Source: Anthoceros angustus (taxonomy: Eukaryota; Plantae; Anthocerotophyta). From it: a DNA stretch of 64,000 nt. The stretch covers positions 757,002 to 821,001 of the forward strand of contig MU008186.1 in assembly GCA_010909165.1 (NCBI GenBank), in the 5' to 3' direction. Positions within the stretch are counted from its first letter, which is position 1; the number at the start of each line of letters is the position of its first letter. Of the stretch, positions 3,471 to 63,517 are shown in pieces. The position numbers were made by a program, and so were the translations under genes. A model generated the notes under the pieces. That model saw nothing but the letters and a program-made list of their open reading frames with translations. It made no database searches and was not told the origin of the DNA.

Positions 3471-3699
3471 CCCTCTGGAGTTCCCAGCGCTGGAATGGTG
3501 TAGTCTTGCCTTGAAATTCCTAGCAGGTTCAGCCGTCCAGTGTTCCTTCCTTCTCAACAACCCGCGCCGCCAGCAGCGCCGCCCTCCTTCTACGCCGGGA
3601 TTCGCGATCTCACTGGTGAGGGTTTGAGGCTGCCCTCCTCCGCGATTGCGCCCTCTCGCTCTCCAGCAGATCGCGGTATCCCCCCGGGTGCAGCTCCTC

Positions 3700-4140
3700 G
3701 ACGTCCTCGCGCTCCAGCCGCCGTTGCGCTCCGCCGTTTGAACGCGTTTAAGGGTCACTTTCCCCCAATTTCCTTAGGGTTAAGTTCCCGGGTTCCCTAC
3801 TGTCTTCTGACCCCTCTCGGCCTCCACACCCCATCCACAACCCCACCCTTTCAACTCGGGTTGGTCGACCTCTAACTATAGTACCCTAATTATTCCAACC
3901 CCTACCTCACATATATAGACTTTTTAGAGGATACCCCAAGTCCATGGGCCAAGGAACATCGAGTACCCGGACCACTTATTATCTAATCTAAGAAAAAACA
4001 AAAAAAACCCCATAGGCCAAGGTCATTTCTACTATAAATACCTTTGCCTACTGTCAACCTGACTTATTTTCACACCACTCTTAACCAAAAAAACAAAAAA
4101 AACACTTCAAGCACATTTCAACGGGAGTTTCCAAGTCGGA
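3700..4140 (-). promoter_or_regulatory. Spacer S1: T-rich 3' region followed by a TATA-box promoter (minus strand)
   Basis: On minus: TTTTTTTGTTTTTT tracts, then AAAAAGTCTATATATGTGAGG (3906-3926), upstream of the cassette A ATG. Repeated at 5150-5530 and 17750-18225. Confidence 0.6.
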
Positions 4141-5530: not shown

Positions 5531-6824
5531 ATCGTTTACATGGCCCCGCCCGGATCTACCGGTGATGTAACGTCCACCCTTCCTTCTTGGGTGAGTCACT
5601 TTTGCCTCCCGGCCTTTCTCTTCTTGCTTGTGGCAAGCTCCTTTTCCTCTTACGAGCGCCCGTCGCCCAGACTCCCGGTTGTGGATCCTTCCTCTATCTC
5701 CTCCTTGAGCTCTTGGCTTTCCACTTCCTCTAAGCGGCTTCCACATGTGGAAGGCCTCCAATGTCTCCATCTCCGGGGCAGTTAGAGTGCGCATCTGGTG
5801 AGCAGGAATGGCGGGAAATTAGAAGGAGACGAGGGAAGAGATCGATTCACCTCTCCTCCACCTAGTGACTCCGATGTGCATATGTGTGAGATGCGCTTTT
5901 TCCATTCGCCTTGTCTTCATCCCCATGCGCACCGTCCCTTCCCCTCTTACGCATACTCTTCTCCGTCCCCTCGTCCTCCAAGCACCTCGTCCTCGGAATT
6001 TGTGTCCTCGTATGTGTCATCCCCATCCGGCTCTTCCCCACCGTCTTCATCCTCATCAGCACCAACATCCGAATCGAATTAATTCCACGAATTGCGTTTG
6101 GCCTCAAGGGTTTTGGCATCGCGTTGAGCCCTTATTATGACCCGCAGATCTTTGAAAGTCGCACGTGGTTCTCCCGCTTCATCACATCCCACGGTTCATG
6201 CATTTTCGCTAGTGGCGAGTGCACCAAATTCGCATTCTTCGTCGGTTGGGGCTCTCCCATACTTTTCTTGGAACTTGAACTCCCAGGCGTCAGCCCCATG
6301 GGTTTTGGCCCTTGTCCATTGGATTTCTCCAATCTCGCCTTTCTTTGAAGCGATGCCTTGAGCGTTCCGTGTTGTCGAGTTCAACTCGTGCCCATGTGAC
6401 AATATCCCTCCACACCTTTTCATCCGCCATGAGGTTTCAAAGCTGACTTTTTTTCCCTACTCTCTTCTCCGCTAAGGCGTATGCCTTTCGCCTCCACATA
6501 TCTGTTCGCGTTGGTGTCTTGACTAAACTCCGACCTAATCATGGACTTCACGAGATCGAACCGTGAAGCCACTTCACGCAGTTCCTTCCTCCTTGCTGCG
6601 CCATACACTTCCGACCAATTCGATGTCCCAATCACGAGGCTTGGCTCTAATTCCTTCGCTGGTTGCTTGTCCTTGGTGGCGAGCACACTCTGCACGGTCG
6701 GGCTCACATAATTCCATCGCTTCTCCATGAAGCCAAGCCCCCTCCTTCACCAATTCCCGACTCGGACCTTCGTGGTCCATATTCGGCTGGCGGTCCTAAT
6801 TCTCTTTTCGGCCTTGGGCGCCAT
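5520..6824 (-). pseudogene. Cassette C: accessory-protein copy interrupted by a CACTA-derived fragment
   Basis: ATG GCG CCC AAG at 6824, then MEKRWNYVSPTVQSVLATKDKQPAKELEPSLVIGTSNWSEVYG. The C-terminal part resumes at ~5830-5520 and matches 4200-4450. Confidence 0.55.
5830..6560 (-). pseudogene. CACTA TnpA-like (Ptta/En/Spm-type) fragment outside the TIR-bounded element
   Basis: 5850-6350 matches 7697-8190 closely. Translation contains WEFKFQEKYGRAPTDEECEFG followed by an acidic tail. Confidence 0.5.
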
Positions 6825-7689: not shown

Positions 7690-8330
7690 ATGCCCCTCCA
7701 CCTAGTGACTCCGATGTGCATATGTGTGAGATGATGCTTTTTCCGCTGCGTTGTCTTCATCCCCATGCTGCCCTTCCCCTCTTACGCATACTCTTCTCCG
7801 TCCCTCGTCCTCCCGGCACCTCGTCCTCGGAATTTGTGTCCTCGTATGTGTCATCCCCATCCTCTTCCCCGTCTTCATCCTCATCAGCACCAACATCCGA
7901 ATCGGAATTAATTCACGCACACTTACAGTGCGTTTGGCCTCAAGGGTTTTGGCATCGCGTTGAGCCCTTATTATGACCGCAGATCTTTCGAGAAAATCGC
8001 ACGGTGGTTCTCCTTCATCACATCCACAGTTCATGCATTTTCGCTAGTGGCGGAGTGCACCAAATTCGCATTCTTGTCGGTTGGGGCTCTCCCATACTTT
8101 TCTTGGAACTTGAACTCCCAGCCCCACGCCCCATGGGTTTGGCCTTGTCCATTGGATTTCTCCAATCTCGCCTTTGTGCAGCGATGCCTTCTCCTTCAAA
8201 TTCACCTCCGCCCGATCGTGCGGACCTACGGACCTTCATCTCGCCTCCACGACAATGTCCTAGGGTATGGATGTGCGGGTTCACATCCTCCGCCCTCCCT
8301 TGAACGCGCCACTTTTGGTGTCCGTTCGGT
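7690..8330 (-). pseudogene. CACTA TnpA-like C-terminal coding remnant
   Basis: Same EKYGRAPT-type and acidic-tail frames as 5830-6350, with frameshifts. Confidence 0.5.
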
Positions 8331-8721: not shown

Positions 8722-11700
8722 TATTCGATGTATGTCATCCCGTTCCATTATCCAAGGATAATTCATCCGTCCTCCCAACCTCTTGTCTATATATGTCACA
8801 TTAGCTTCATGTGTGTATGTGGTGTCCATACATCCATATGCCTCCTTGGGTGGCGGGCGCCACATTCCCTTCCTCTTGCCCGCCACTTGTTAGCTCCAGC
8901 AGTTGGTCTGGACCCACCGCAATCCCCTTTTAGTAGTATTGCTCCGACCAGCTCCTTGTTGTCCATGTCGTCCCACACAATGCTGGCCCATGTTTTGCGC
9001 AACATGGTGCCTCCGCCGTTGACCGCTGCAGAAATTCCCGCCCACACTTGTGAGGCTGCAAAAGCGAGCTCGCGGGCACTACCCGTGCCATTACACTCGG
9101 CATCTTCTTTGTGAATCGGAACCTCGTCCATTCCTCCAGCGAGGTCCTCCCAACATCCATGTCCTCCATCGCATCCGGATCCCATATGGCATTTCCATGT
9201 GCTCCCAATCTCCACCCTTAAAATTGCCTCACAACCCCAGCGGCATCGGTTTGCCCGAGGCGTCGTATGCTTCCTTCCGGCAAAATTCTGTCACCGTGAC
9301 CAAGGTGCGGGCCGCCCGCAAAGCTTTAGTATCAAACGGACAGCATGAACAAGTGTAAAACTAACCGTGTCCGGCAAGGTATAGGCACAAACCATGTCTT
9401 TGAGTTCTCTCCACAGAAGTGCCGGACTCACGAATCGGGTCTGTCGATGTGCAAGGCATTTCGTGCCGTTAGGATAAAGCGCAAGATGGGAAGGCGTAAG
9501 CGAGATGGCAAACCGCGGAATGGCGCAGATTGTAGCCTCTTTCAAACCCGTGGTTCCGCCTCCGCATGCCGCCGGACAAAAGACCACCCGTTCGCGACTC
9601 CCGCCCGCGCCATGTGACCGAAATCACCAGCAAAGGAAACTTGTTCCCTTCGACTCCATCTCGACATGGCGGCCGGACCCTCCCTCCGCCTTGCCCGGCC
9701 GATGTTTTCAATTGATGGAATTGGAATAGTTTTGACACGGCAATTTATTGCCGCACATCCTTACATGCAGCGAGAAAACCGATGGACTCGCCACAATCGG
9801 TACCTCGACTGACCGCTTCCATTCCTGTTATCCCGCATGCCACCCGTTCTCATTCCAATTGCATGGGACGCATAGGGTGACAAGTGTTACGCTTCCTTTA
9901 CTCCTCTTCGTTACAACCGGCTTTGCAACGCGTGCCGGAAGGCAAGTTTCATACATGAATCTCATCGTTCACAATGCAATCGCAACAAAGCCATCGCCAA
10001 ACACGCCGTCGGCTTGCCCTTTCCATCTAAGAAAGGGCGTGTGATATTCATTCCAAGATTTCCTACTTCTTCCTCACATGAGGGCTGGTTACCAAGTACC
10101 GTGTCTCTATTCCAAAGAGGCGGGTGCATACCCGAGCTCCCCGCAATCGGTACTCCCCAATGACGCGTCATCCTCCATATGTGCACACATTCGCAAGAAT
10201 CGAATCACGAACCGCTTCGCAAGTTCCTCCGTGTTATCGGCATCTCTTTGTATTTTCGGGATGGCGTGGTTGTATGGCCGCGTGGGCGATCGATGCCTTC
10301 TCCTTCAAATTCACCTCCGCCCGATCGTGCGACCCTACGGACCTTCATCCTCGCCTCCACGGACAATGTCCTAGGGTATGGATGTGCGGGTTCGCACATC
10401 CTCCCGACGCCCTCCCTTGAACGCGCGCCACTTTTGGTGTCCGTTCACCATACCGCGCATCATAAAAGAGATGACTCGTTCGCATCTCCATCCATAGGCC
10501 CTCACCATTTATAGGCGGTCGTCCTTGGGTGTCGGGCATAATGCGAGCATTGTCCACGTTTAATTCGGATATTAATATATACCATTCTCCAAGGTCAAAT
10601 TTATGCGGCATCGTTGGTTTGCCAAGGATCATGTCGTTCGTGCCTACATATGTCACATATCGGTTCCTGCCTACATATGTCACATGACCACATGTCCGTA
10701 TGTGGAAAATGTCCATATTTTCCGCATGCATGCGGATTTATAGGCCGGTCGTCCTTGGGTGAGAATAATTAAGTACCATTAGTCGTGTATTAATACATTA
10801 TTGAATGTATTAATACACTATTCGATATGTCATCCGTTCCATTATCCAAGGATAATTCATCCGTCCTCCCAACCTCTTGTCTATATATGTCACATTAGCT
10901 TCATGTGTGTATGTGGTGTCCATACATCCATATGCGTCGTCCTTGGGTGGCGGGAATGAATAAGTACCGATGTCCGTGGGTTTTTCGATGTTTTGCTACA
11001 CACCATTATCGAAGGGTATATCCTCCCATCTTTCCGCCTATACATGGCACATGACCTTCATTGCGATATGTGGTACATGTCCATGTGTTCCATACATCAC
11101 CCTCACCATTCACTTGTTTTTGCAGACACACCTACATGCTTGTCGAGGCAATGGGCATTGCGGCGTGCATTGAACAAAATCTTTACCTGCTAACTTGATT
11201 CCCGCGCTTGTGCGGTGCGTGCCCGGCCTCGTGCTGTGCGCGCCGTGATGCGGCGCATTTCTATAATTCATCGATGGTTAGCCATTCCTCGGGGCCATTG
11301 TTCCAAACTGCGTGCACCGCTCGCGGCAAGCTTGTGTGTGGTGACCTCTTCACTTTCATGCGTTTCCGTCCTTCCGCGCCCGACCTTCCGCTCACCACCG
11401 TTTTGTGCACTTGCGAGCATCGGTGGAAAGTGTCTCGGCCGCACCCGATGCGCCGCGCAATAGGGATCCTTTTCGACGGAGATGGAGCATCATCCGCGGA
11501 CACGTGCACAGGCGTCGCCAGCCCTCGCGCCCGGCAATCGCGAAGAAGGAGCTCGCCAGGGGCTGACTGGAGTCGACAGCAGATGCCTTGGATGCTCGCA
11601 GGCGCGTGCAGGAGGTAGGGAGGTGTTTACTTGAAATCACACAGTGGATGGACTTGGTGCCGGCTCTCGATGTTTGGGCTTGGTTCGTGGATGAGCGCCA

Positions 11701-17453: not shown

Positions 17454-17749
17454 CTCCCTGCCCTTGGCGCCTCGAATCGGTGATTCCTTGCCTCGAATTT
17501 CCTAGCGGGGTCAGTCTTCGAGGGTTCCTACCTCCTCAACCAACGCGCCGCCGCCACTAGCGCCGCCCTCCTTCAGCGTCGCGAGCCCGCGCCCTCGCTA
17601 GTGAGGATTTTAAGCTGCCTCCCTCCGTGGGTGCGCCTCGCGCCCTCCTTCCTATCGCGGTGCTCCTCCAGTCGCAGCTCCTCGACGCCTAGCTCACTCC
17701 AGCCGCTTCACGCTCCACTCCTCGACGCTATATTTGCTCCGGCCGCCGT

Positions 17750-18225
17750 TGCGCCTCCGTTTGAATGAGTTTACAGCCGGTACCCTTCCCAGGTTCTCTT
17801 AGGGTTGATTCCACTTCCCCACCAGTTCCCACGACTACTTCTCCTTGACGGCCGTTCTCGGCATACCCCCACACACCTCGATCCCAACCTCACACATGAT
17901 AGGCCTACCAGTTGGATCGACCTCTAACCTATGGACTTAGCAACCTCTACCAAATATGAGGACCCCCCCCTCCTCACATATATAGACTTTCTATTAGATA
18001 TTCCGAGGACAAAGGCCAAGGAATATCGAGTTTACGGTCCAAGGACCATTTATTCTTTAACCTAGGAAACAACCCATCCCCCATAAGCCAAGGACATTTT
18101 CAAGTACAAATATCCCTTCTTACTGACAACCTGACTCACTTTAACACCACACTTAACAAAAAAACAAAAAAAATCACTCAAAGACACAATCCAACAGGGA
18201 GTTTTTGAATCCAAATCGTTTACAC
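17750..18225 (-). promoter_or_regulatory. Spacer S3 (copy of S1/S2), original promoter of cassette C
   Basis: catatatagacttt at 17977-17990, A-tracts at 18156-18173, same block order as S1 and S2. Confidence 0.6.
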
Positions 18226-18463
18226 CATGCCTTGAGGTTGGCCCCCGCGAGGGACCGGGTGCACCATGAAGGACGCTATGCGTGGAGCCCCTGTCTCTTG
18301 AGGTGCCGCGGTGGCCCCTCCGGCCTAGGTTTATTTCATAGCGGCGGGGATGCCCTCCCCCTAGCCTATCTTATACACGGCTCGCTGTCTACCCGCCTCC
18401 ACTACACAACCCGCCCCCATTGGTTGCCAACATTGCTTCCCTCGACGCACCTCAGACGAAAAG

Positions 18464-18761
18464 TGTTCTGAAGAGGTTAAGGGCTCTCCATGTCCACACT
18501 GTGCACTAGGAACAAGTCATAAACTTAAGCATTAAGTGCAGGTCAATTAAATAATAAACGATTAAATAATTACATCTTGTCAAGGAAGCTACTCGTATAT
18601 ATGTTCTTGTAAGTCCAACTTAAGTTATTATGAAAAGGTGTGCCTATTGATGAAACGACGTAACCCTAATGAAAGGGTAACCTGCTGACTTTAAACATTA
18701 ATTAATCTATTTCTTAATATGCTGATAACACACCTAATCTAACCACTCTTAGGTTTTATCA
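18464..18761 (-). repeat. Putative 3' LTR of copia element 1
   Basis: On minus it begins TGATAAAACC directly after the purine-rich CAAGTGGGAG (18762-18771), is AT-rich, contains TATATA, and probably ends ...GAACA. The distal boundary is uncertain because no 5' LTR is available for comparison. Confidence 0.55.
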
Positions 18762-19028
18762 CTCCCACTTGTTGAAGCATGTTAAGAACAGAACAGTCTC
18801 CTGAAGGTCTTCTCGTGACAGTCTCTTCAGCTCCCGTCTTGAAGGCGGCGCACATGTAACACTCAACTACGCCCCACGTCCATTACGCTCCACTCCAGTC
18901 CTTGATAAACAATGGACTTTGACGGCATGGAACCGTATCCTGTGAGGTGCGCCCCGTTTGTAGGCATCTTATATGCCTTCATTCTTGTGATAAGGCTCAA
19001 GATTGAACGCCGCTTGCTAGAGCTCACC

Positions 19029-19933
19029 ATGTCGCCCTTTTCAGACGAAAATTCTCCCAGGCGGCGGCTTAGAGCCTATGTGCGCGATAGCCAAGGCCGA
19101 TTCACCAGAAGAGCTCGGACACCTGTCAGCGATGCTAACAATGAGATTGTGCTGTGGCGCGCGGTGATTGGTGAGGCGCCCAAGAGGAAGGCCGCGAGGC
19201 AGAGGAAGAAGTCCGGCGCGGGGAAGAGGAAGAGCGATTCGTATGCCTCCAGCTTATGCCCGCCCTTCTTCACTAACTCAAGATCACCAACACCCATCAC
19301 AGTCGCGAGCCTGAGTGTGAATACCAGGATCATGAGGCTCTGCCAAGGAAACCCTCGATGTTTCCAGACACTGAAGACTATCTGGAGGAGACTAGAATTG
19401 TCACCCTTGGCAGCATTACTAATCCTAGATCACCTGTTTGGTACAAATGCACAAACAGCCGCCTTGTGATGAAGAGGGTTTGTGTCCAGGCTTGCCAAGA
19501 ATATCCAAATCATGTTGTCAGCCATTATCGTAAGTTGATCACACCCTTTGATTTATGCTGCCACCATCTGTAGCAGATTGCTGCCCTAACTCCCACTTAC
19601 TGCTGAAACTGTGAATGTTGTGTTGACATAGGTTCTGAAATAAGACTGCGTGAGGAAGAGAGGTTGAGAACTGAGGCACGCATCAGAGAGGAAGAGCAAC
19701 TGTCCTATGAGGACAGGAAGAAACGAAACAGTTCAAGTTCCTCTGAAGATGCCTCCAACTCTCAGTCCATTGAATCTAGGTTGCTTGATTCTGACAGCGA
19801 AGAAGCGTCCTCCCACGAGTCAGAATCACAGCACTCTGATCCTGAAAGTAAAGAAATAAATTCCCCAAGGACTCCAGATTCCATCAACTATCCAACAAGC
19901 AACCATTCAAACTCCAACAACAGCTGGGATTAG
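19029..19933 (+). CDS. Predicted three-exon gene antisense to copia pol (exons 19029-19240, 19303-19529, 19632-19933; 246 aa, unknown function)
   Basis: Intron 1 GTATGC..CACTAAC..CACAG (19241-19302, 62 nt) and intron 2 GTAAGT..CCCTAAC..CATAG (19530-19631, 102 nt). Both splices join three separate ORF-track frames into one stop-free frame ending at TAG 19933. Start context is CACCATG. Confidence 0.75.
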
Positions 19934-19956
19934 GCATAGCTTGTTGTTTCCTTTTG

Positions 19957-21509
19957 TTACTGTGACTGTAGGAAGTCTTCAGACTTCCCCATACCAAGAC
20001 CTTTAACATGCCTTGCATGCAGATCCCTTCCAAGGGCTTTAGTAAGTATGTCAGCTGGATTATCAGCTGTTGGGATATATTGCAGTGTGATTTTTCCAGC
20101 TTGCACTAGCTCTCTGATAAAGTGGTATTCCACTTCAACATGCTTGGTTCTTGAGTGAAACACTGGATTTTTGGCTAATGCAATTGAGCCTTGGTTATCT
20201 GTATTTATAGTTGTACAAGTTGGTAAGCTTATGCCCATTTCTTTAAACAATAGCTTGAGCCATACAACTTCTTTAGCAGCAGCAGTTAGGACTCTGTATT
20301 CAGCCTCTGTACTGGAAAGGGCTACTGTTGGCTGCTTTTTGCTGCTCCAACAGATAGGGCCTCCAGCAAAACAAATAACATACCCTGATACTGACTTCCT
20401 TGTGTCTATGTCCCCTGCATAGTCAGAGTCAGTATATACCTCTAGGTCTAGGGCATCCTTTTGATGCTGATACTTCAGCCCTAAGTCTGCTGTACCCTTT
20501 AGGTATCTAAACACTCGTTTGAGACTTTGCCAGTGTTCTTGACCAGGGTTTTCTAAGTACTGGGATAGCACACTTGTAGAATATGCTATCTCTAATCTAG
20601 TTGTATTTGAGGCATAGATTAATTTCCCTACACCCTTCCTGTAAGGTATGTTAGCCATAGCATCCTTCTCATTTTGTGTTTCAGGACTCATGTCTTTGCT
20701 GAGTTTAAGTCCAATAGGAAGTGGGGTTGCTGCAGGTTTAGCATCCTTAAGCCCCATTTGTTCAGCACTATCTAGGATGTACCTAGGCTGAGTTAGAGTG
20801 ATAAGTCTTCTACTCCTATCTCGCTGAACATGTATTCCTAGACAGCTGTGAAGTGGTCCTAGGTTTGTCATATCAAATTTAGCTGCTAACAGTCCATTCA
20901 GTTCTAGAATATAGTTAGGGCTGTTGCAAACTAATATCAGGTCGTCTACATAGACAGCCAGATAGCAAACCACTTCACCTTTCCTTTGGACATACAAACT
21001 GCCATCAGCCTTACATTTCTCAAAGCCTAAAGTCTGAAGCTCTTCATCAAGGGATTCGTTCCACTTTAGAGTTGACTGTTTAAGGCCATATAGAGTTTTC
21101 TTCAAAAGAAGAACATGATCCTCTTTCCCTTTAACCTCATAGCCTGGTGGCTGCTGCATGTAGATTTCTGTGTCAAGCTTCCCATGAAGGAAAGCTGTCT
21201 TCACATCAAACATTTGTAACTCATAGTCTTTGAATGCAGCTTCTGCGCAGAGAGTTCGAAAGGTAGCCATCTTTACAACAGGTGCATATGTCTCAAAATA
21301 GTCAAGGCCTGGTACTTGGGAGAAGCCTCGAGCAACAAGCGAGCTTTGTACCTATCAAAGGTACCATCAGCCTTCACTTTGAGCTTGAATACCCACTTAC
21401 AAGACACCATTTTTCGTCCTGGAGGTAATTCAGCAAGTTCCCAAGTGCCATTTTTTATTAACGAGTCATACTCTGACTGTATGGCCATCTGGTCACAGTC
21501 TGTGGCCAC
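19957..21509 (-). CDS. pol: Copia reverse transcriptase-RNase H (a 1-bp frameshift near 21335, otherwise open)
   Basis: CKWVFKLK, FDVKTAFLHG, LKKTLYGLKQS, YVDDL, YTDSDYAGD, SSTEAEY, RTKHVEVEYHFIRE, ADILTK. Confidence 0.95.
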
Positions 21510-24419
21510 AGTCTGGTTTACTCTGAAGGTAGTCTGATCGGGTGTGAGGAGGACGTCCAGGACGAACCTGAGGACACCGAGGGCTTTGCGGATGGCATTC
21601 TACCATGTGGGGAGGACAAAGATGCGCGTTGGAGGAAGTCAAGGTGGGTCAAGAGGAGGAGGAGAACTCAAGAAGAGGCGAGGATGACCTCGGGATATTA
21701 TCCTGCACGTGATGGTTCACGGCGGTCGCTCGGATCGCGGAGGAGTGCAGTGCAGGCCTTCACAGTGGGAAATGTGAAGAAAGGGGGAACACAGGAGAGG
21801 CCCTGCAGATGGCAAACACATTCCTGAAAGGGACGGGCGGTAGCGAAAGCCAAACCTGTGGCAAGGCGGAGAAGCCTGGAATTGTGGAGGAGGAGGAGGA
21901 AGAGGATCCACCGCCAAGGTTGTGGAGAGATCTAAGGGCAGTAGTCGCCATTGGCGATGATAGGCTCGGCGCCATAAAAGCGAGATGCAAGTCGGGACGT
22001 CGAAAGGACGGTATTGCTATCAAGAGTCCGGGAGTCTACCTTGAAGTTGCCAATCAAGTCGCCGCACTCCCAAGATCCGTGTGAGGCAACAAGGTGAGGA
22101 AGCCGGATCTCGCGTGGGTAGAGGCTTTGATGCGTAAGATGAAACACGCCATGGGTAGCCGGTGTCTGCCAATGGTTGTGGTTGTCGACCTCTCGCAATG
22201 TCCTCACAAAGAGAACTTTGACGCGTTGAGAAGGTGGGATGAGGGCTTTACAATTTCTTCGCCTTGGGAGGGAACCATTCCTTCCGTGCAAGGTCCCGCT
22301 CGATCCGCACTCAATGAAGGAAGAGTTCAAGTGGATGGATGCATATGTGCTAATGGACTCATCGAGGACGAGATGAGGATCGATGAGTCCGAGTCACTGA
22401 AGTCCCGCCAGTGAAACCGCGGACGTCCGGTGCGGCGGTGAGTATCATGGACACCACGGCGGCAGACAAACCGAGGCTTCCGGATCCCCATGTGGTATTG
22501 AAGAAGCATTGTTGGGATGCCTCGCCACCGGAGTATCGGGTTGCTCCCAACAAGCAAAGATCATGGGTTGCTTCAATTTAGCCATAGCGGTGGCCATAGC
22601 GGTGTAGTAGCTGTCTGGAGCTCTTCGTCCATTGGACACGGCATGGAAATGGTATAACCGGAGGAGCATTCAAGAACCCAAGTGGCTCTTCCAGATGAAG
22701 TGATAGTGGATTTACACTAGCTAGACGATATTTGGACATGAGCGAGAGGTTTATACAGTAGGCCACAGAATGCTGCAAGAAGGGAACGCCTAGAACAAAG
22801 AAGATGCAGGATTGCACAGTAGATCCAGTGGCATGATGATTGCGGTCCAGCGGAGATGATCCGACGGCCGTCCTTTCTCGCTGGGTGGGCTGGATGTAGA
22901 CCATGAAGTCACTGGACCAGTAGCGCAAGTCCACCGGTGGCGATCAAAACCCTAATGCATTGGAGGGTAGGTATTTGGAAGAGTGGGTGCTACAACCCTC
23001 CCAGCCGTAGAAAAGGTCGACGCAGTGCACCCTTTGAAGAAACATGTGCAACCAATCAAGCTTTTGGAGACCACAATCATGGGTTATGATTTCGAGGTTG
23101 ACGAGGAACAAGACTTTGAGCAAAGACACAATGGACATCTTTGGGGAGGAAGGTCTTGAGTTACAGGCGAGCCAAGTGAGGCAGAAGCTTTGCTTCCTCC
23201 ACACATTGATGGTGAAGCAAGTGGTGACGAGCAGATTGATTCCGAAGACTTGGACAGCGTTGAATCTTAGATGCATCAGATTGATTATTTGGTAGACTTC
23301 TTTGGAAGGTGTGGACTGGGTGAGAGCAGGATCTTAACCCACCAAGGATTCGAGAATTTCGAGGTTGGCCCAGGAGAGATCTTGAGTGAGGCAGGTGAAT
23401 ACATAGTCGTGGCATAGATGTTTTGAGGGTATATGTGGATGTGTGATCCAGTGTTCATGTTTTGACATAGAGTTTTGATCTTGATGCATTGTGCCCTTGT
23501 ACCGGATGTCCGTGCTAAAGCTCTCAGTCGGTTTTTAATTGTGGTGAGCAATCCGGCAAGCTGTTCGGCGGCCAGCGGTATTTGGGTTTTGTGATAGGGT
23601 GCGAGGCTCGAGCCTTACGTGATTGAGGTGCGGTAGCGGGCTTTTGGTGACAGGCGGGGTTGGGGGCGGTGAGGGCGTAAACGCCTGCGCTGCCGTGTGA
23701 TGGGGAGCGGACGGAGGCGTGCGGCCAAGAGCAGTCGGCGTGAGGGAGCCGGATTACAGGCCGTGCGCCACGCGTCCAGATTCTAATGAGGCGGCGGTCA
23801 CAGGGGCCGAGGGGCAGGCCATTTGCGATGAGGCGGGGAGGCGGGGTGCAATAATGACTATATGGGCGGGGTGCCTATACTGCAGAAGCCTTCCAATGTC
23901 TTTTCTCTCTCTCTTCGTTAACTTCCTTTCCGTCATTTTGTTTTTCCAATCCTTTTACACAATAAAAGGATTATCATCCTTCTCGTAATTAGGCTCTAAT
24001 CAAAATAGTTTTTGGTTAAATCACACATATTCTATTGGAGTAGATGGAGTGTAATATGGTTGTGTCTTCTCTTGAATAGTACTTTTTGAGCTGCTGATTG
24101 TATGGTCCGGATAAATGTATAATCATTTGAATATTTCATCCAAGCGAGAATATTTCAATTTAAACCATTGTCGAATTCATATATAAAACTTATCTATTTT
24201 TAACTTTAGTACTCACCTCAAAGAGTGAAAACAACTCGTTTTGATTCTTGATAACTACAAACAAAAAGTAAAAGTAATTAGTCATTTACCTCCATTTCAA
24301 TTCGGAGAAGATCTTTCTTTGCATATACCTTTTACAAGCGTTAAACACGTGTGAAGATTCCCCACCTGGAAATGTGATCGTATGTTACGAAGAAACATAA
24401 ACATTAGAATTTTTCTTGG

Positions 24420-26027: not shown

Positions 26028-29000
26028 ACCTCCCACTTAAAGGCCAATTTACCTTCAGAGGAGAATGGACTATCTCATGCCCATCTGTCCGAGCTTGTGC
26101 AAATTGCTGTAGAGAGTCCCTTGGTAAGAATATCTCAGGGGTTGGTGGTGAACCTTGACAAGTTGTACCCTCTTGTCCCAACACCTCTCGAATGAAGTGA
26201 TACTTCACATCCACATGTTTAGTCTTCGCATGAAACATCGGATTCTTTGCCAATTGGATAGCACTGCTATCACAATGCAACACCGGCAGCCTCAACCTTG
26301 ATCCCCAAGTCTCCCACTAAACGAGCAAGCCATATGGCTTCCTTGCAAGCCTCTGCAACATACTCGGCCTGTGGTAGATAGCGAATGCACGATCGCAAAC
26401 GAGATCGCCATGAGATCGCCTCCAAAGCACACGTGAAGACATAACTCGATGTGGACCTCCTTTTGTCCATATCCTCGCATAATCGATCTGGTACCCAACC
26501 ACATGCATCTTCACTACCAAAACATATGCACAAAGCTTTTGTACCATTCGATACCTCATAACTCCTTTTATCGCCTCCCAATGCTTCTTGCCGTGGTTTG
26601 ACATAAACTGCTAACCACTCCCACGCAAAGGCAATGTCGACGTAGCAATCATTGCATACATCAAACTCCCTACATGATGAGTATGGGACCTTCTCCACTT
26701 TGTCCTCCTCGTAGCTTGGGCAATCCGCGCTTGAAAGTTTCACATATGGAGGCAATGGAGTACCCAATGGCTTCCCTTCTCCATGTTGAAACGTTGAAGC
26801 ACACGTTAATGTATTCAGAGACAAAATAAAGCGACGCTTATGTCCTGCTCCGACACGCATGCCAAGTATATGGCTCGCCTCCCAAGTCTCGCTATTTCAA
26901 AGTGAGCATTCAACTTTGACTTCAACGAAATCCAAGATCGCTCCAAAGAATTAGCATATCATCCACATAGAGGATCAAAATGAGCAAGCTTTGATCCTTA
27001 GCTTGCTCAGATAGAGGCAATGATCCTCATCGCCACGCTTTGTAGCCTTGAGAAAGCATAAATGAGTGGAACTTGTGATACCACCGGGTGCCCGTTTCAA
27101 ACCATAAAGGCTCTTCCTCAACTCGCACACCGATGCTCTTTGCCCTTCTCAACAAAACCTTCCGTTGTGCATGTAGACGCCCCTCTTGAAGGTCACCATG
27201 CAAGAATGCCGTTGACATCCATCCGCATAAGTTCCATATCATCTCGCAACCAAAGCAAGAACACATCGCAAAGTTGTCATTTTGACTATCGGTGAGAAAA
27301 TCTCATCAAAGTCAATGCCTGTTGTTGCTTGAAACCCTTAGCAACCAATCGCCTTGTACTTTGGTTTGCCATCAAGTATGACCTTCATCTTGTACACCAT
27401 TTGCACTGAGTGCCTTCTTATCCTAGCAACCAACCAACTCCCAAGTTTGGTTCTTATGCGTAATTCATTTCGATCGCATGGCCTTCTCCCACTTCTTGTT
27501 ACTCGTTGACATGGCCTCTTTGTAAGAAGAGGGTTCCCCACAACTGTCGATAACATAATCCGAGATGGATCATACCGTGAGGTCGTGTAATCCGCCTCGA
27601 CCACGGCAGTGCACCTCTATAGGTGCTTGTTCGACTCTTGGTTCATCTATGGTGGAGGAATGTGCTCGCACATTACCACCAAACCCCGCCATGATGATCA
27701 TGTCCATCTTCTTGGAAGATCACCCTTCGCACCTCCACGCTTGGAGTAGGCTTCTGCGTGCATCTTGTTCTCATTGAAGAACACGTACGAACAACCTTTC
27801 TAGCCTCGGATCCCACAAACGGTATCCCATCTCACCGAATCACCATAGCCAAGAAAAATACATTTCTTGGACTTAGGTGCCAACTTGTCCGAAACTCTTT
27901 TGGAACATGGCAAGATGCCTCACAGCCCAAACACTCGCATGCTTGTAGGATGGTTTCTTTCCGCACCATAGCTCCTCCGAACTCGCTCATCAATGCCTTA
28001 TTAGGAGATCTCATTAAGATGAATGCAGTGACATCGCCCAAAACCCATTAGGCAATCCGAGTTTGACAACAAACTACGCATCCTCTCCTCGAATGGTTCT
28101 GCTCATCCGCCGCCCACACCATTTTGTGGAGGAGTATACTGCAAATTCTTTTGATTCCCTTGGAATCAATGACTGAAAGCTGAAACATACTCGCCACCAT
28201 TATCCGCCCTTAGACACTTCAATCGGTGACCGATTCTCTACAAGGGTGACAAATTTCAAACACCGCCGAACTTCATCCTTTTTCCTCAAAGGATAAAACC
28301 CACACCTTGCGTGAGAAATCATCTATGAAAGTGACAAAATAGAGGCACCGCCTAATGATGCAGGCATAGGTCCACATACATCAGTGAACCAACTCAAGAG
28401 GTTTACTCCTACTTTTACCTCGTGTTCGATGTGATGATTTTGTCTGCTTTCCCATATAAACAAAGGCTCACATCGAGAGATCAGAAGTTAAGAACAGGAT
28501 ATAACCGTAACGAGATAAAACCTTCATTCCCTTCTCGAGACATATGTCCTAACCGCAATGCCACAAGGAAACATTTGGTGCTCTCAACGATCACATGATC
28601 TTTGATGTTTACTCAAGTGAGTACAAAGTGCCACACTTCGATCCACGAGCTAACACAAGAGAACCTTTGGAGATCTTCCAAGAGTGATCCCCAAAACCAG
28701 TGGTAACCAAAGATCATCCAACCGCCCGCGCTAATCATGCTCTTTGTCAACTTCGAACATGCCTAACGCCCTTCAAAGATGAATGAAGATCCGTTGTCAA
28801 ACTTGAGTTGCACATCACCCACGCCCGCGATCCGCATGCATAGTTATTTCCAAGCCTAACGATCCTTTCCTTGTAGCATCATACGTTAAACCACTCTATG
28901 AGGAGTAACATGGAAAGATGCACCGAGTCAATTATCCAATTGCGTAATAAATGACTATCCACACGTTAATCAGATTCAAGTAAGAAGAGATAAGGACATC

Positions 29001-60401: not shown

Positions 60402-63400
60402 AGCGGTATCGAGCCATGGTTTGGTTGTGTTGTGATGCTAGAATTTTCTAGGCTGCGGCGGCTCGTGAATTGCAGTGATCGGCATGGCGCGGCGCGAGCG
60501 CCGGCGAGGCCTGGCGAGCGGCGGGCCTGCCGCGGGCACGCGGCCGCGAGGCCTCCGTGGCCAGCGCCTGGCAGGCGGTGGCGCAGCGGCCCGCTGCCGG
60601 CCCGGCCCACGGGCGGCGCGGCCCGGCGCGCCGCGCGCGCCGGCGCGAGCAGCGGCCGCAGCCGCGGGCGGCCGAGCGCGCGAGCGCGGCCCAGGCGCAG
60701 CCGCGGGCGTGGCAGCAGCGCGTGGCCCGCCCGGGCCCCAGCGCCCGGCCCACAGGCCTTGAGCGCGCGGCCGGCCCTTGCCGCAGCGCCCGCCGTGCGG
60801 CGCGGCCGTCTGGCGGCGAGTGGCGGTGGCGGGCGGTGCCGTGCGCGAGCCCGGCGGGCGGCACAGTTGCGGAGTGCGAGCGCGGGCGGTGGCGAAAATT
60901 TCGAAATCGGCGGAATACTCGTGGAATAACGCGCAAAATACAGGAGCGGTATTTCTTCTTTGACTTTTCGACAAGGCGAGTCGTGTTTTATCTGTATCGA
61001 TTTTTGAGTCATGATGTCTTCATCATCGAGCGTCATGTTCAATATCGAGAAGTTAGATGGTACTAACTTCCCGTTGGAAAGAACAAGTGTATAATGTTCT
61101 AGTGCGAAAAAGCGGATCAAGCCCATAAAGTTGTTAGGCGTCAAACCGGATAGTATGACCGGGATGAGTGGCGGGACTGGATGAGCTTGCTAGATCTACT
61201 ATCATGCTAACATTGTCAAAAGCATGTACTTCAATGTGAAAGATAAGACCACGAGTTACGGATGGCGGATGTGACACAGGAGAAGCAAAGTGCGGCTTCT
61301 CGGTGTATTGGTTGAAAGCTGGTGGACTTGAAGATGAAGGAAGGGACGAGGATGTCCGATCATCGAATGATTTCAATACCATTTTCAGCCGCTCTCATCT
61401 CAAGGTATCAGTTCCAGTGAGAGCTATGTTTGGGTCACATTACGAGTTGGGACACCTTTAAATGCGGCTCGAGTAATTACTTTGCTAGTGGTCTTACCAT
61501 TGTAAATGTAGAAGGTAGCACATTGGCGAGGAGGTGAGCAGGAAAACATGGAACCTTCCAAAGGTTCCGGTGCCCTCATAGTGAGAGGGAGGTCCCTGCG
61601 AAGGGAAGCAACGAAGCTTCTCTCGTAGCAAATCTCGTAGTCGTAACAAGAATGTGGAGTGTCACTATTGTCACAAAGGGTCACTTCAAAAGAGTGCGAG
61701 AAGTTCAAAAGGACCAAGGAAAGAGAAGCGGGGCGACAAGCGACTTGCATCGAGTTGGAAGAGTTAAACTCGTTGAGGACGGAGATGTCCTTATCTCTTC
61801 TTACTTGAATCTTGCACAATTACGTAGTGGATAGTCATTTATTACGCAATTGGATAATTGACTGTGCATCTTTCCATGTTACTCCTCATAGAGTGGTTTA
61901 CACGTATGATGCTACAAGGAAAGGATCGTTAGGCTTGGAAATAACTATGCATGCGGATCGCGGGCGTGGTGATGTGCAACTCAAGTTTGACAACGGATCT
62001 TCATTCATCTTTGAAGGGCGTTAGGCATGTTCGAAGTTGACAAAGAGCATGATTAGCGCGAGACGGTTGGATGATCTTTGGTTACCTTCTTTGGTTTGGG
62101 GATCACTCTTGGAAGATCTCAAAGGTTCTCTGTGTTAGCTCGTGGATCGAGTGTGGCACTTTGTACTCACTTGTAAACCATCAAAGATCATGTGATCGTG
62201 TGACAGCCAAATGTTTCCTTGTGGCATTGCGGTTAGGACATATGTCTCGAGAAGGGAATGAAGGTTTTATCTCGTTACGGTTATATCCATTCTTAACTTC
62301 TCGATCTCTCGATGTGTGAGCACTTTGTTTATATGGGAAGCAGACAAAATCATCACATCGAAATAAAAGTAGAGTAAACCTCTTGAGTTGGTTCACGATG
62401 ATGTATGTGGACCTGCCTCTGCATCATTAGGCGGTGCCTCTATTTTGTCACTTTCATAGATGATTTCTCACGCAAGGTGTGGGTTTATCCTTTGAGGAAA
62501 AAGGATGAAGTTCGGCGGTGTTTGAAATTTGTCACCCTTGTAGAGAATCGATCGGCCACCGATTGAAGTGTCTAACGATAATGGTGGAAGTATGTTTTAA
62601 AGCTTTCCGGTCATTACATGATTCCAAGGGAATCAAAAGAGAATTGATAGTCTCCTCCACAAAATGGTGTGGCTGAGCGGATGAACAGAACCATTCAGGA
62701 GAGGATGCGTAGTTTGTTGTCAAACTCTGGATTGCCTAATGGGTTTTGGGCAGAAGCAGTGTCTACTGCAGTTCATCTTATTAACAGATCTCCTAATAAG
62801 GCTGTTGATGAGCAGGTTCCAGAGGAGCTATGGTCTGGAAAGAAACCATCCTACAAGCATCTGCGAGTGTTTGGCTGTGAGGCATACTGCCATGTTCCAA
62901 AAGAGTTTCGGGACAAGTTGGCACCTAAGTCCAAGAAATGTATTTTTCTTGGCTATGGTGATTCGGTGAGATGGGATACCGTTTGTGGGATCCGAGGCTA
63001 GAAAGGTTGTTACTAACACGTGTTCTTCAATGAGAACAAGATGCACAGGAAGCCTACTCCAAGCTGGAGGTGCGAAGGGTGATCTTCAAGAAGATGGACA
63101 TGATCATCATGGGCGGGTTGATACGTGGTAATGCGGGGCACATTCCTCCACCGATGATGAACCAAGAGTCGAACAAGCACCTATAGAGGTGCTGCCGTAG
63201 GTCGCAGATTACACGACCTCACAGCGGTATGATCCATCTCGGATTATGTTATCTTGTGATTGTGGGGAACCCTCTTCTTACAAAGAGGCCATGTCAGCGT
63301 AACAAAGAAGTGGGAGAAGGCCATGCAGTCAGAAATGAATTCGCTGCATAAGAACCAAACTTGGGAGTTGGTTCCGTTGCCTAAGGATAAGAAGGCACTA

Positions 63401-63517
63401 CCGTGCAAATGGGTGTACAAGATGAAGGTCATACCGCTTGATGGCAAACCAAAGTACAAGGCACGACTGGTTGCTAAGGGTTTCAAGCAACAACCAGGCA
63501 TTGACTTTGATGAAACA
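60149..63517 (+). mobile_element. Ty1/copia element 3 (same family as element 2), gag-PR-INT-RT start, interrupted at 63518
   Basis: MFNIEKLDGTNF (61035), zinc knuckle, WIIDCASFHVTP protease region, AERMNRTIQERMRSLL integrase, CKWVYKMK...KARLVAKGFKQQPGIDFDET RT. Confidence 0.92.

Follow-up and report, generated by a model that had tools for sequence, protein, structure and literature searches.

A predicted spliced antisense gene between pol and the 3' LTR of a Ty1/copia remnant in Anthoceros angustus

The copia remnant and its antisense reading frame

The window, which is the whole 64,000-nt stretch of Anthoceros angustus DNA analysed here, carries on its minus strand the 3' part of a Ty1/copia retrotransposon and, on the plus strand, in the spacer that separates the pol stop from the polypurine tract (PPT), a predicted gene of three exons. 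The features of the locus are the following:

18490-18761, minus strand: start of the putative 3' LTR, with its TG at 18761-18760 and running to lower coordinates; position 18490 is merely the end of an A+T-rich stretch
18762-18775, minus strand: PPT, purine-rich on this strand and directly followed by the TG of the LTR
18912-19240, plus strand: exon 1 of the antisense gene, with a probable start at ATG 18912 and the originally predicted start at ATG 19029
19241-19302, plus strand: proposed intron 1, 62 nt, with a GTATGC donor, a CAG acceptor and CTAAC at 19273-19277
19303-19529, plus strand: exon 2, the Cys/His-containing middle of the product
19530-19631, plus strand: intron 2, 102 nt, with a GTAAGT donor, a TAG acceptor and CTAAC at 19586-19590
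19632-19933, plus strand: exon 3, a charged helix-like stretch followed by an acidic Ser-rich tail, with the stop at 19931-19933
19957-21542, minus strand: remnant of copia pol that opens with the start of RVT_2 and extends to the C-terminus, with its stop at 19957 and one frame change

The host element is marked as copia by a Pfam RVT_2 match (E 1.8e-39) on the long open stretch of pol, with the start of the domain in a separate small piece. The two pieces of pol homology correspond to a single break in the reverse transcriptase (RT), one of them being still open for 437 codons, and pol ends after the RT-RNase H region, with no integrase beyond. The original prediction had taken the element to look young. 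It is 5'-truncated and broken once in RT, and its gag, protease and integrase were not found within the window, where the integrase matches belong only to two other copia fragments, B and C. At no setting was a 5' LTR or an LTR pair found in the window; the stretch 18490-18761 has no repeat in the window, and blastn and tblastx of 18401-21600 against the window returned no further copies of the element. Because it is 5'-truncated, the element is a remnant that is itself dead in its present copy, and a young or intact state is not confirmed.

A search with pol yielded thousands of copia matches at 45-48% identity and a single closer one, the protein P0021 (69% identity over 57% of the query; 67% in direct alignment), through which the 2.5-kb Logan contig L001 of another sample (run SRR33208241) was found. 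The stretch taken as the 3' LTR has a GC content of 0.33; its start by the PPT aligns to the end of L001 (41 nt, 83%), and a 17-nt block at 18759-18775 is identical to L001 2455-2471. The spacer from the pol stop to the PPT covers 18776-19956 (1.18 kb) and contains the gene. Both the PPT and the LTR start are found on the far side of the gene and show conservation with L001, which places the gene inside element sequence. The location originally claimed for the unit, within copia sequence, on the opposite strand and between the pol stop at 19957 and the PPT/LTR start, is borne out; the gene is antisense to pol and convergent with it, and 23 nt separate its stop from that of pol.

Two other copia fragments were encountered in the window. 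Fragment B (26158-28455, minus strand) belongs to another lineage and extends in several pieces from integrase through the end of pol, and fragment C (62373-63517, plus strand) runs from integrase to the start of RT and is about 51% identical to the present element in their overlap. The same PPT core accompanies fragment B at 26028-26037, and pol of this fragment ends only about 120 nt away, which leaves no room for an extra gene; the long spacer is therefore specific to the lineage of the present element.

On the plus strand, the three-exon frame at 19029-19933 agrees with the original prediction in its letters, its coordinates and all the peptide pieces quoted from it. Counted from ATG 19029, exons of 212, 227 and 302 nt add up to 741 nt, stop included, and encode 246 codons. 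Both introns are of the GT-AG type with CTAAC upstream of each AG, and in intron 1 the distance from CTAAC to the CAG acceptor is 25 nt. Left unspliced, the frame of exon 1 is open from ATG 18912 to 19469, an ORF of 185 codons. The ATG at 19029, at which the gene had been proposed to begin, is present; because homology and open frames reach upstream of it in both elements, ATG 18912 is the likelier start, and the coding sequence probably begins there and yields a product of 285 aa. Translation from ATG 19029 (246 aa) is possible, given a later transcription start. A TATA-like motif at 18970 was considered as a promoter and dropped, the stretch being probably coding by homology. Just 5' of ATG 18912, in the interval that separates the PPT from the gene, 18860-18897 holds 2.5 copies of a 16-nt unit, which could belong to the start zone.

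The in-frame double splice had been named as the main evidence for the gene. Its value was gauged with a spliced-ORF counter, which reports the longest path from an ATG to a stop that uses no more than two introns, and with two comparison sets, namely 238 tiles of 1061 nt from both strands of the window and 300 dinucleotide shuffles. When GT..AG is the sole rule, frames of at least 246 aa arise in 30 of the 238 window tiles and in 1 of the 300 shuffles; with so many tiles doing as well, the in-frame double splice alone is weak evidence. A further rule demands CTAAC 10-50 nt before the AG and was run with or without the donor GT[AG]NG[TC]. The splice rules were chosen after the model had been seen, and the figures obtained under the CTAAC rule are indicative only: the best model of the region consists of exactly the two introns originally proposed, with 285 aa from ATG 18912; none of the 300 dinucleotide shuffles reaches 246 aa (maxima 207 and 199); and 3 of the 238 window tiles do so, all through long unspliced ORFs, with a maximum of 257 aa and none at 285 aa. 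Applied to the spacer, the counter gives 285 aa on the plus strand versus 85 aa on the sense (pol) strand, which holds no longer ORF even with splicing allowed. No tandem repeats were found in the ORF, and the open frames are not explained by repeats.

A related element from another sample

In L001, the spacer from the pol stop to the PPT block measures about 840 nt and holds an antisense ORF that ends 28 nt from the pol stop, the corresponding distance in the window element being 23 nt. In this ORF, a charged stretch leads into a tail that is acidic and rich in Ser. Its frame is interrupted by one stop, and L001 is without a counterpart of intron 1 and of most of exon 2; sense-strand ORFs of 65-98 aa are also present in its spacer.

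The intron of L001 is 137 nt long (GTGAGT...CTAAC...AG), and its place matches that of intron 2 within one codon, with phase 2 in L001 versus phase 1 in the window. A 12-nt block of intron 2, CTAACTCCCACT (19586-19597), is identical in the L001 intron, where about 0.003 matches would be expected by chance for stretches of such sizes, and the acceptor context, AG and then GTT, is alike in the two introns. The PPT core occurs twice in each element, at 18760-18769 and, within intron 2, at 19588-19597 in the window, and at 2455-2471 and about 1905-1917 in L001. On the plus strand the 12-mer reads as a branch-site motif, whereas its minus-strand reading is a second PPT-like core, and either or both could be what is conserved. 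Conservation of the splice sites in a relative, as the original prediction would have it, is seen for the place of intron 2, whereas intron 1 is absent from L001. Intron 2 would accordingly be the sole intron common to both elements, and the proposal of intron 1 would depend on its own signals and on its bridging of the conserved exon 1 frame and the exon 2 frame.

The N-terminal part was compared with L001 at the protein level. For the alignment that begins at ATG 19029, 3 of 2000 shuffles were as good; extended upstream, the alignment scores 49, versus 23.8 +/- 4.2 for shuffles, none of 3000 reaching 49, and it takes in a hydrophobic segment in both sequences (Kyte-Doolittle 2.5 and 2.3 over 15 residues). 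The frame pair concerned is the sole one of 18 that is stop-free in both sequences and has the top score; one pol-strand frame pair scores 44 versus 49, and the frame-specificity of the N-terminal match may be regarded as moderate. In a frame-blind DNA alignment, the indels of the N-terminal part measure 3, 12 and 3 nt, and those upstream of it 1, 1, 3 and 10 nt. Mismatches at the three codon positions number 26, 22 and 36 over 53 codons, a count biased by the choice of the alignment at the protein level. The end of exon 2 aligns weakly with L001 (33 of 2000 shuffles as good), and for the C-terminal tail 599 of 2000 shuffles were as good, the likeness being compositional only.

Given that L001 has the same antisense layout, is homologous at the N-terminus and carries an intron in the corresponding position, the unit does not behave as a one-off capture, in keeping with the original view of it as a component of the element. 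In a metagenome scan, pol identity did not exceed 49% at any of the 11 loci obtained, none of which matches the exons and whose antisense ORFs are unrelated; two further contigs stop right after pol, and searches of the viral and prokaryote collections returned no further relatives. The unit is accordingly seen in one close relative only, L001, in a shorter and once-interrupted form, and is lacking in the more distant copia loci.

The two elements also share a gradient of CpG content. In the window, pol (19957-21542) has a CpG o/e of 0.15, with 0-3 CpG per 300 nt despite its long frame, exons 2 and 3 have values of 0.32-0.38, and the 5' end of the antisense gene (18912-19240) reaches 0.99 at a GC content of 0.56. 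L001 shows 0.26 in pol (109-1612) and 0.70 in the N-terminal ORF (2126-2368). Elsewhere CpG is not depleted, the o/e being 0.80 in copia B, 0.53 in copia C and 0.81 in the whole window. Because L001 has the same gradient, and because the other copia fragments and the window are not depleted, the CpG contrast is a trait of this lineage. CGN arginine codons supply part of it, and the contrast fits a start zone that would be spared the CpG depletion affecting the remainder of the element.

Predicted product, known systems and rival explanations

Protein traits and searches were taken exon by exon. Exon 1 is rich in Arg and Lys (pI 11.8, net charge +13) and contains one NLS-like Lys/Arg cluster, and a hydrophobic N-terminal segment precedes this basic part if the start is ATG 18912. 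Exon 2 contains 4 Cys and 3 His and is close to neutral, and exon 3 is low-complexity and acidic (pI 4.7), 25 of its 99 residues being Ser. A hydrophobic segment with basic residues after it would be compatible with a membrane anchor that keeps most of the protein on the side of the cytosol or the nucleus. For the nuclear protein originally proposed, the hydrophobic N-terminal segment makes a purely soluble form less certain.

Searches for relatives of the product, likewise made exon by exon, gave no credible homologue for exons 1 and 2 and no Pfam family for any exon. Neither the exons nor the 185-aa ORF matched a Pfam family at E up to 1, bZIP included, and no sequence match was obtained in the PDB at E up to 1. 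The 185-aa ORF (exon 1; targets of 102-324 aa) found nothing in a large-database search, and exon 2, searched against 1.84 billion representatives, met only repeat proteins, P0121-P0123 and P0124. The first three, which are bacterial Cys-repeat proteins (E 1e-16), were rejected as homologues of exon 2, as a short Y-x-C-T-N...C...C motif is inflated there by 5-10 repeats; P0124, likewise a repeat protein, was treated as a chance match. The exon 2 motif that resembles the Cys-repeat unit lies at 19430-19510 and was judged to be due to chance. AlphaFold gave a poor fold model of exon 2 alone, with a pLDDT of 52.

Ty3/gypsy elements have been described with additional antisense ORFs, termed aORF-3R, in the region from pol to the 3' LTR, including gene23 of maize Grande, rice RIRE2, Silene Retand, 15 Phaseolus ORF2 families and Boty of Botrytis; their products are orphans, evolve fast and are thought to be regulatory, and the Grande gene has a promoter of its own and a nuclear product (PMC7264820, PMC4093653, PMC11963269). 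The present gene resembles them in its place between pol and the 3' LTR, its antisense orientation, its orphan protein and its fast evolution. It differs in that its element is copia (RVT_2), whereas the named examples are all gypsy, and in that the present model needs two introns and gives a small product of 246-285 aa, whereas gypsy aORF-3R are described as continuous ORFs. From none of the searches, which in the large databases covered exons 1 and 2, did any likeness emerge to the Grande gene23, RIRE2, Retand or Phaseolus ORF2 proteins or domains (Transposase_28, SMC). We take the present gene, with moderate confidence, to be of the aORF-3R kind, here in copia, and by these searches none of the named examples is related to it in sequence.

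Among copia elements, the SIRE lineage carries an env-like extra ORF (eORF-3'F) on the sense strand between pol and the 3' LTR, which is heterogeneous and fast-evolving (PMC6317226, PMC4093653). Both cases belong to the copia superfamily and have an additional ORF placed after pol and before the 3' LTR; the SIRE ORF is sense-strand and usually longer, whereas the present one, as modelled, is antisense and spliced, and no similarity was found between them. According to a plant-wide survey, the SIRE sense ORF is the only extra ORF typical of a copia lineage, and this survey took only continuous ORFs of at least 250 codons (PMC6317226). Being limited to continuous ORFs, it would have missed spliced ones. 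In a limited literature search, no account of such a spliced antisense gene in a copia element came up.

In HTLV-1, the transcript of the antisense gene HBZ is spliced. HBZ is transcribed from the 3' LTR of this retrovirus and has a nuclear regulatory product (PMC7264820, PMC11963269). The present unit would be like HBZ as an antisense unit starting at or in the 3' LTR, a likeness by analogy only. Unlike HBZ, which comes from a human retrovirus, the present gene lies in copia and has no bZIP match, so that membership is excluded on the tests made.

We give an about even chance to the reading of 18912-19933 (plus strand) as a predicted, lineage-specific antisense accessory gene of one Ty1/copia lineage. 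Transcription would begin in the CpG-rich zone at the border of the PPT and the 3' LTR and proceed towards pol. Because the introns lie on the strand opposite to the genomic RNA, they would never be spliced from it and would persist through copying of the element. The product, of 285 or 246 aa, would consist of a hydrophobic N-terminal segment, a basic NLS-like stretch, a Cys/His middle, a charged helix and an acidic Ser-rich tail, and its C-terminal part would be fast-evolving. It would most likely work for the element in or at the nucleus, in a regulatory or chaperone-like capacity and with effect on the element's expression or its nuclear steps; the anti-silencing or targeting function originally suggested is hypothetical. 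The convergent transcript may also supply antisense RNA against pol. A fuller version, in which a conserved intron-bearing copia antisense gene would be expressed from a CpG-island-like 3' LTR border, would encode a membrane-anchored or nuclear regulator of the element and would be the first copia counterpart of gypsy aORF-3R and retroviral antisense genes, is offered tentatively, and we consider it doubtful.

The spacer might instead be non-coding, perhaps a 3' UTR with cis signals such as the second PPT, possibly with an antisense ncRNA, the frame having arisen by chance through free choice of GT-AG sites. This is a possible reading, though an unlikely one. The ease with which GT-AG alone yields at least 246 aa (30 of 238 tiles) and the lack of any homologue or domain found are in its favour, as are the low-complexity exon 3, whose likeness to L001 is compositional, the stop in the L001 frame and the sense ORFs of 65-98 aa in the L001 spacer. 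To these may be added the score of 44 for a pol-strand frame pair and the fact that the conserved 12-mer equals the PPT core. A chance frame fits poorly with the CTAAC rule, under which, with figures that are indicative only, 0 of 300 shuffles and no tile equal the model, and with the contrast between 285 aa on the gene strand and 85 aa on the pol strand. The top-scoring frame pair is also the only one stop-free in both sequences, the indels of the N-terminal part are in-frame, and the open frame ends 23-28 nt from the pol stop in both elements, all of which speaks against a chance frame.

Two further explanations would place the selection or the origin of the unit in the host. The remnant could be a domesticated copy, in which host-level selection keeps the frame open though the element is dead; such a reading could draw on the intact frame within a 5'-truncated element and on the CpG-island-like 5' end (o/e 0.99) adjoining pol at 0.15. 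The intactness is nevertheless not special to the gene, since the adjacent piece of pol is also open for 437 codons; moreover, the unit in L001 is an ordinary part of its element, with PPT and LTR start beyond it, and no orthologous single-copy locus is known; we judge domestication improbable. Even less probable, in our judgement, is a host gene or gene fragment, either captured once by a single copy (transduction) or merely adjoining a broken copia fragment. A CpG content and composition unlike those of pol and the lack of a second copy in the window would agree with a host origin, but the unit recurs, again flanked by pol and the PPT, in L001, which is from another sample and whose pol is only 67-69% identical. 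In addition, the gene is followed by the PPT and the LTR start, and neither the window nor the databases searched yielded a paralogue of host type.

Gypsy elements and retroviruses are the groups from which antisense accessory genes in the region from pol to the 3' LTR have been reported to date. If the reading as an antisense accessory gene is true, the aORF-3R-type layout arose in the copia superfamily too, and ORF-based surveys under-count spliced antisense genes. The steep CpG contrast offers a measurable handle, through methylation and the mapping of transcription starts, on gene expression from a silenced element.

Other features of the window

An ORF on the minus strand at 13561-14043 matches Pfam Transposase_21, of the CACTA/tnp2 type, at E 1.2e-6 and just under the gathering score; a word-based protein search returned no relatives of it. 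Many ORFs of 150-350 aa in the window are without a Pfam family, and for none of the window proteins tested does the nearest database relative exceed 69% identity. The window gave no match to any Rfam family, rRNA and tRNA included.

Several repeats were also noted. A C-rich repeat is present in two diverged copies, at 3500-4140 and 17470-18230, which are about 73% identical in their best 91 nt, with the latter a short way to the left of the copia remnant. Direct repeats of 105 nt at 8740-8844 and 10834-10938 are 99% identical and 2094 nt apart, and could be the ends of a small LTR-type element. Another pair, at 5855-6074 and 7695-7908, is 79-83% identical and about 1.84 kb apart. Finally, the window shows strand asymmetry in long blocks, with a GC skew down to -0.31 and an AT skew to -0.37.
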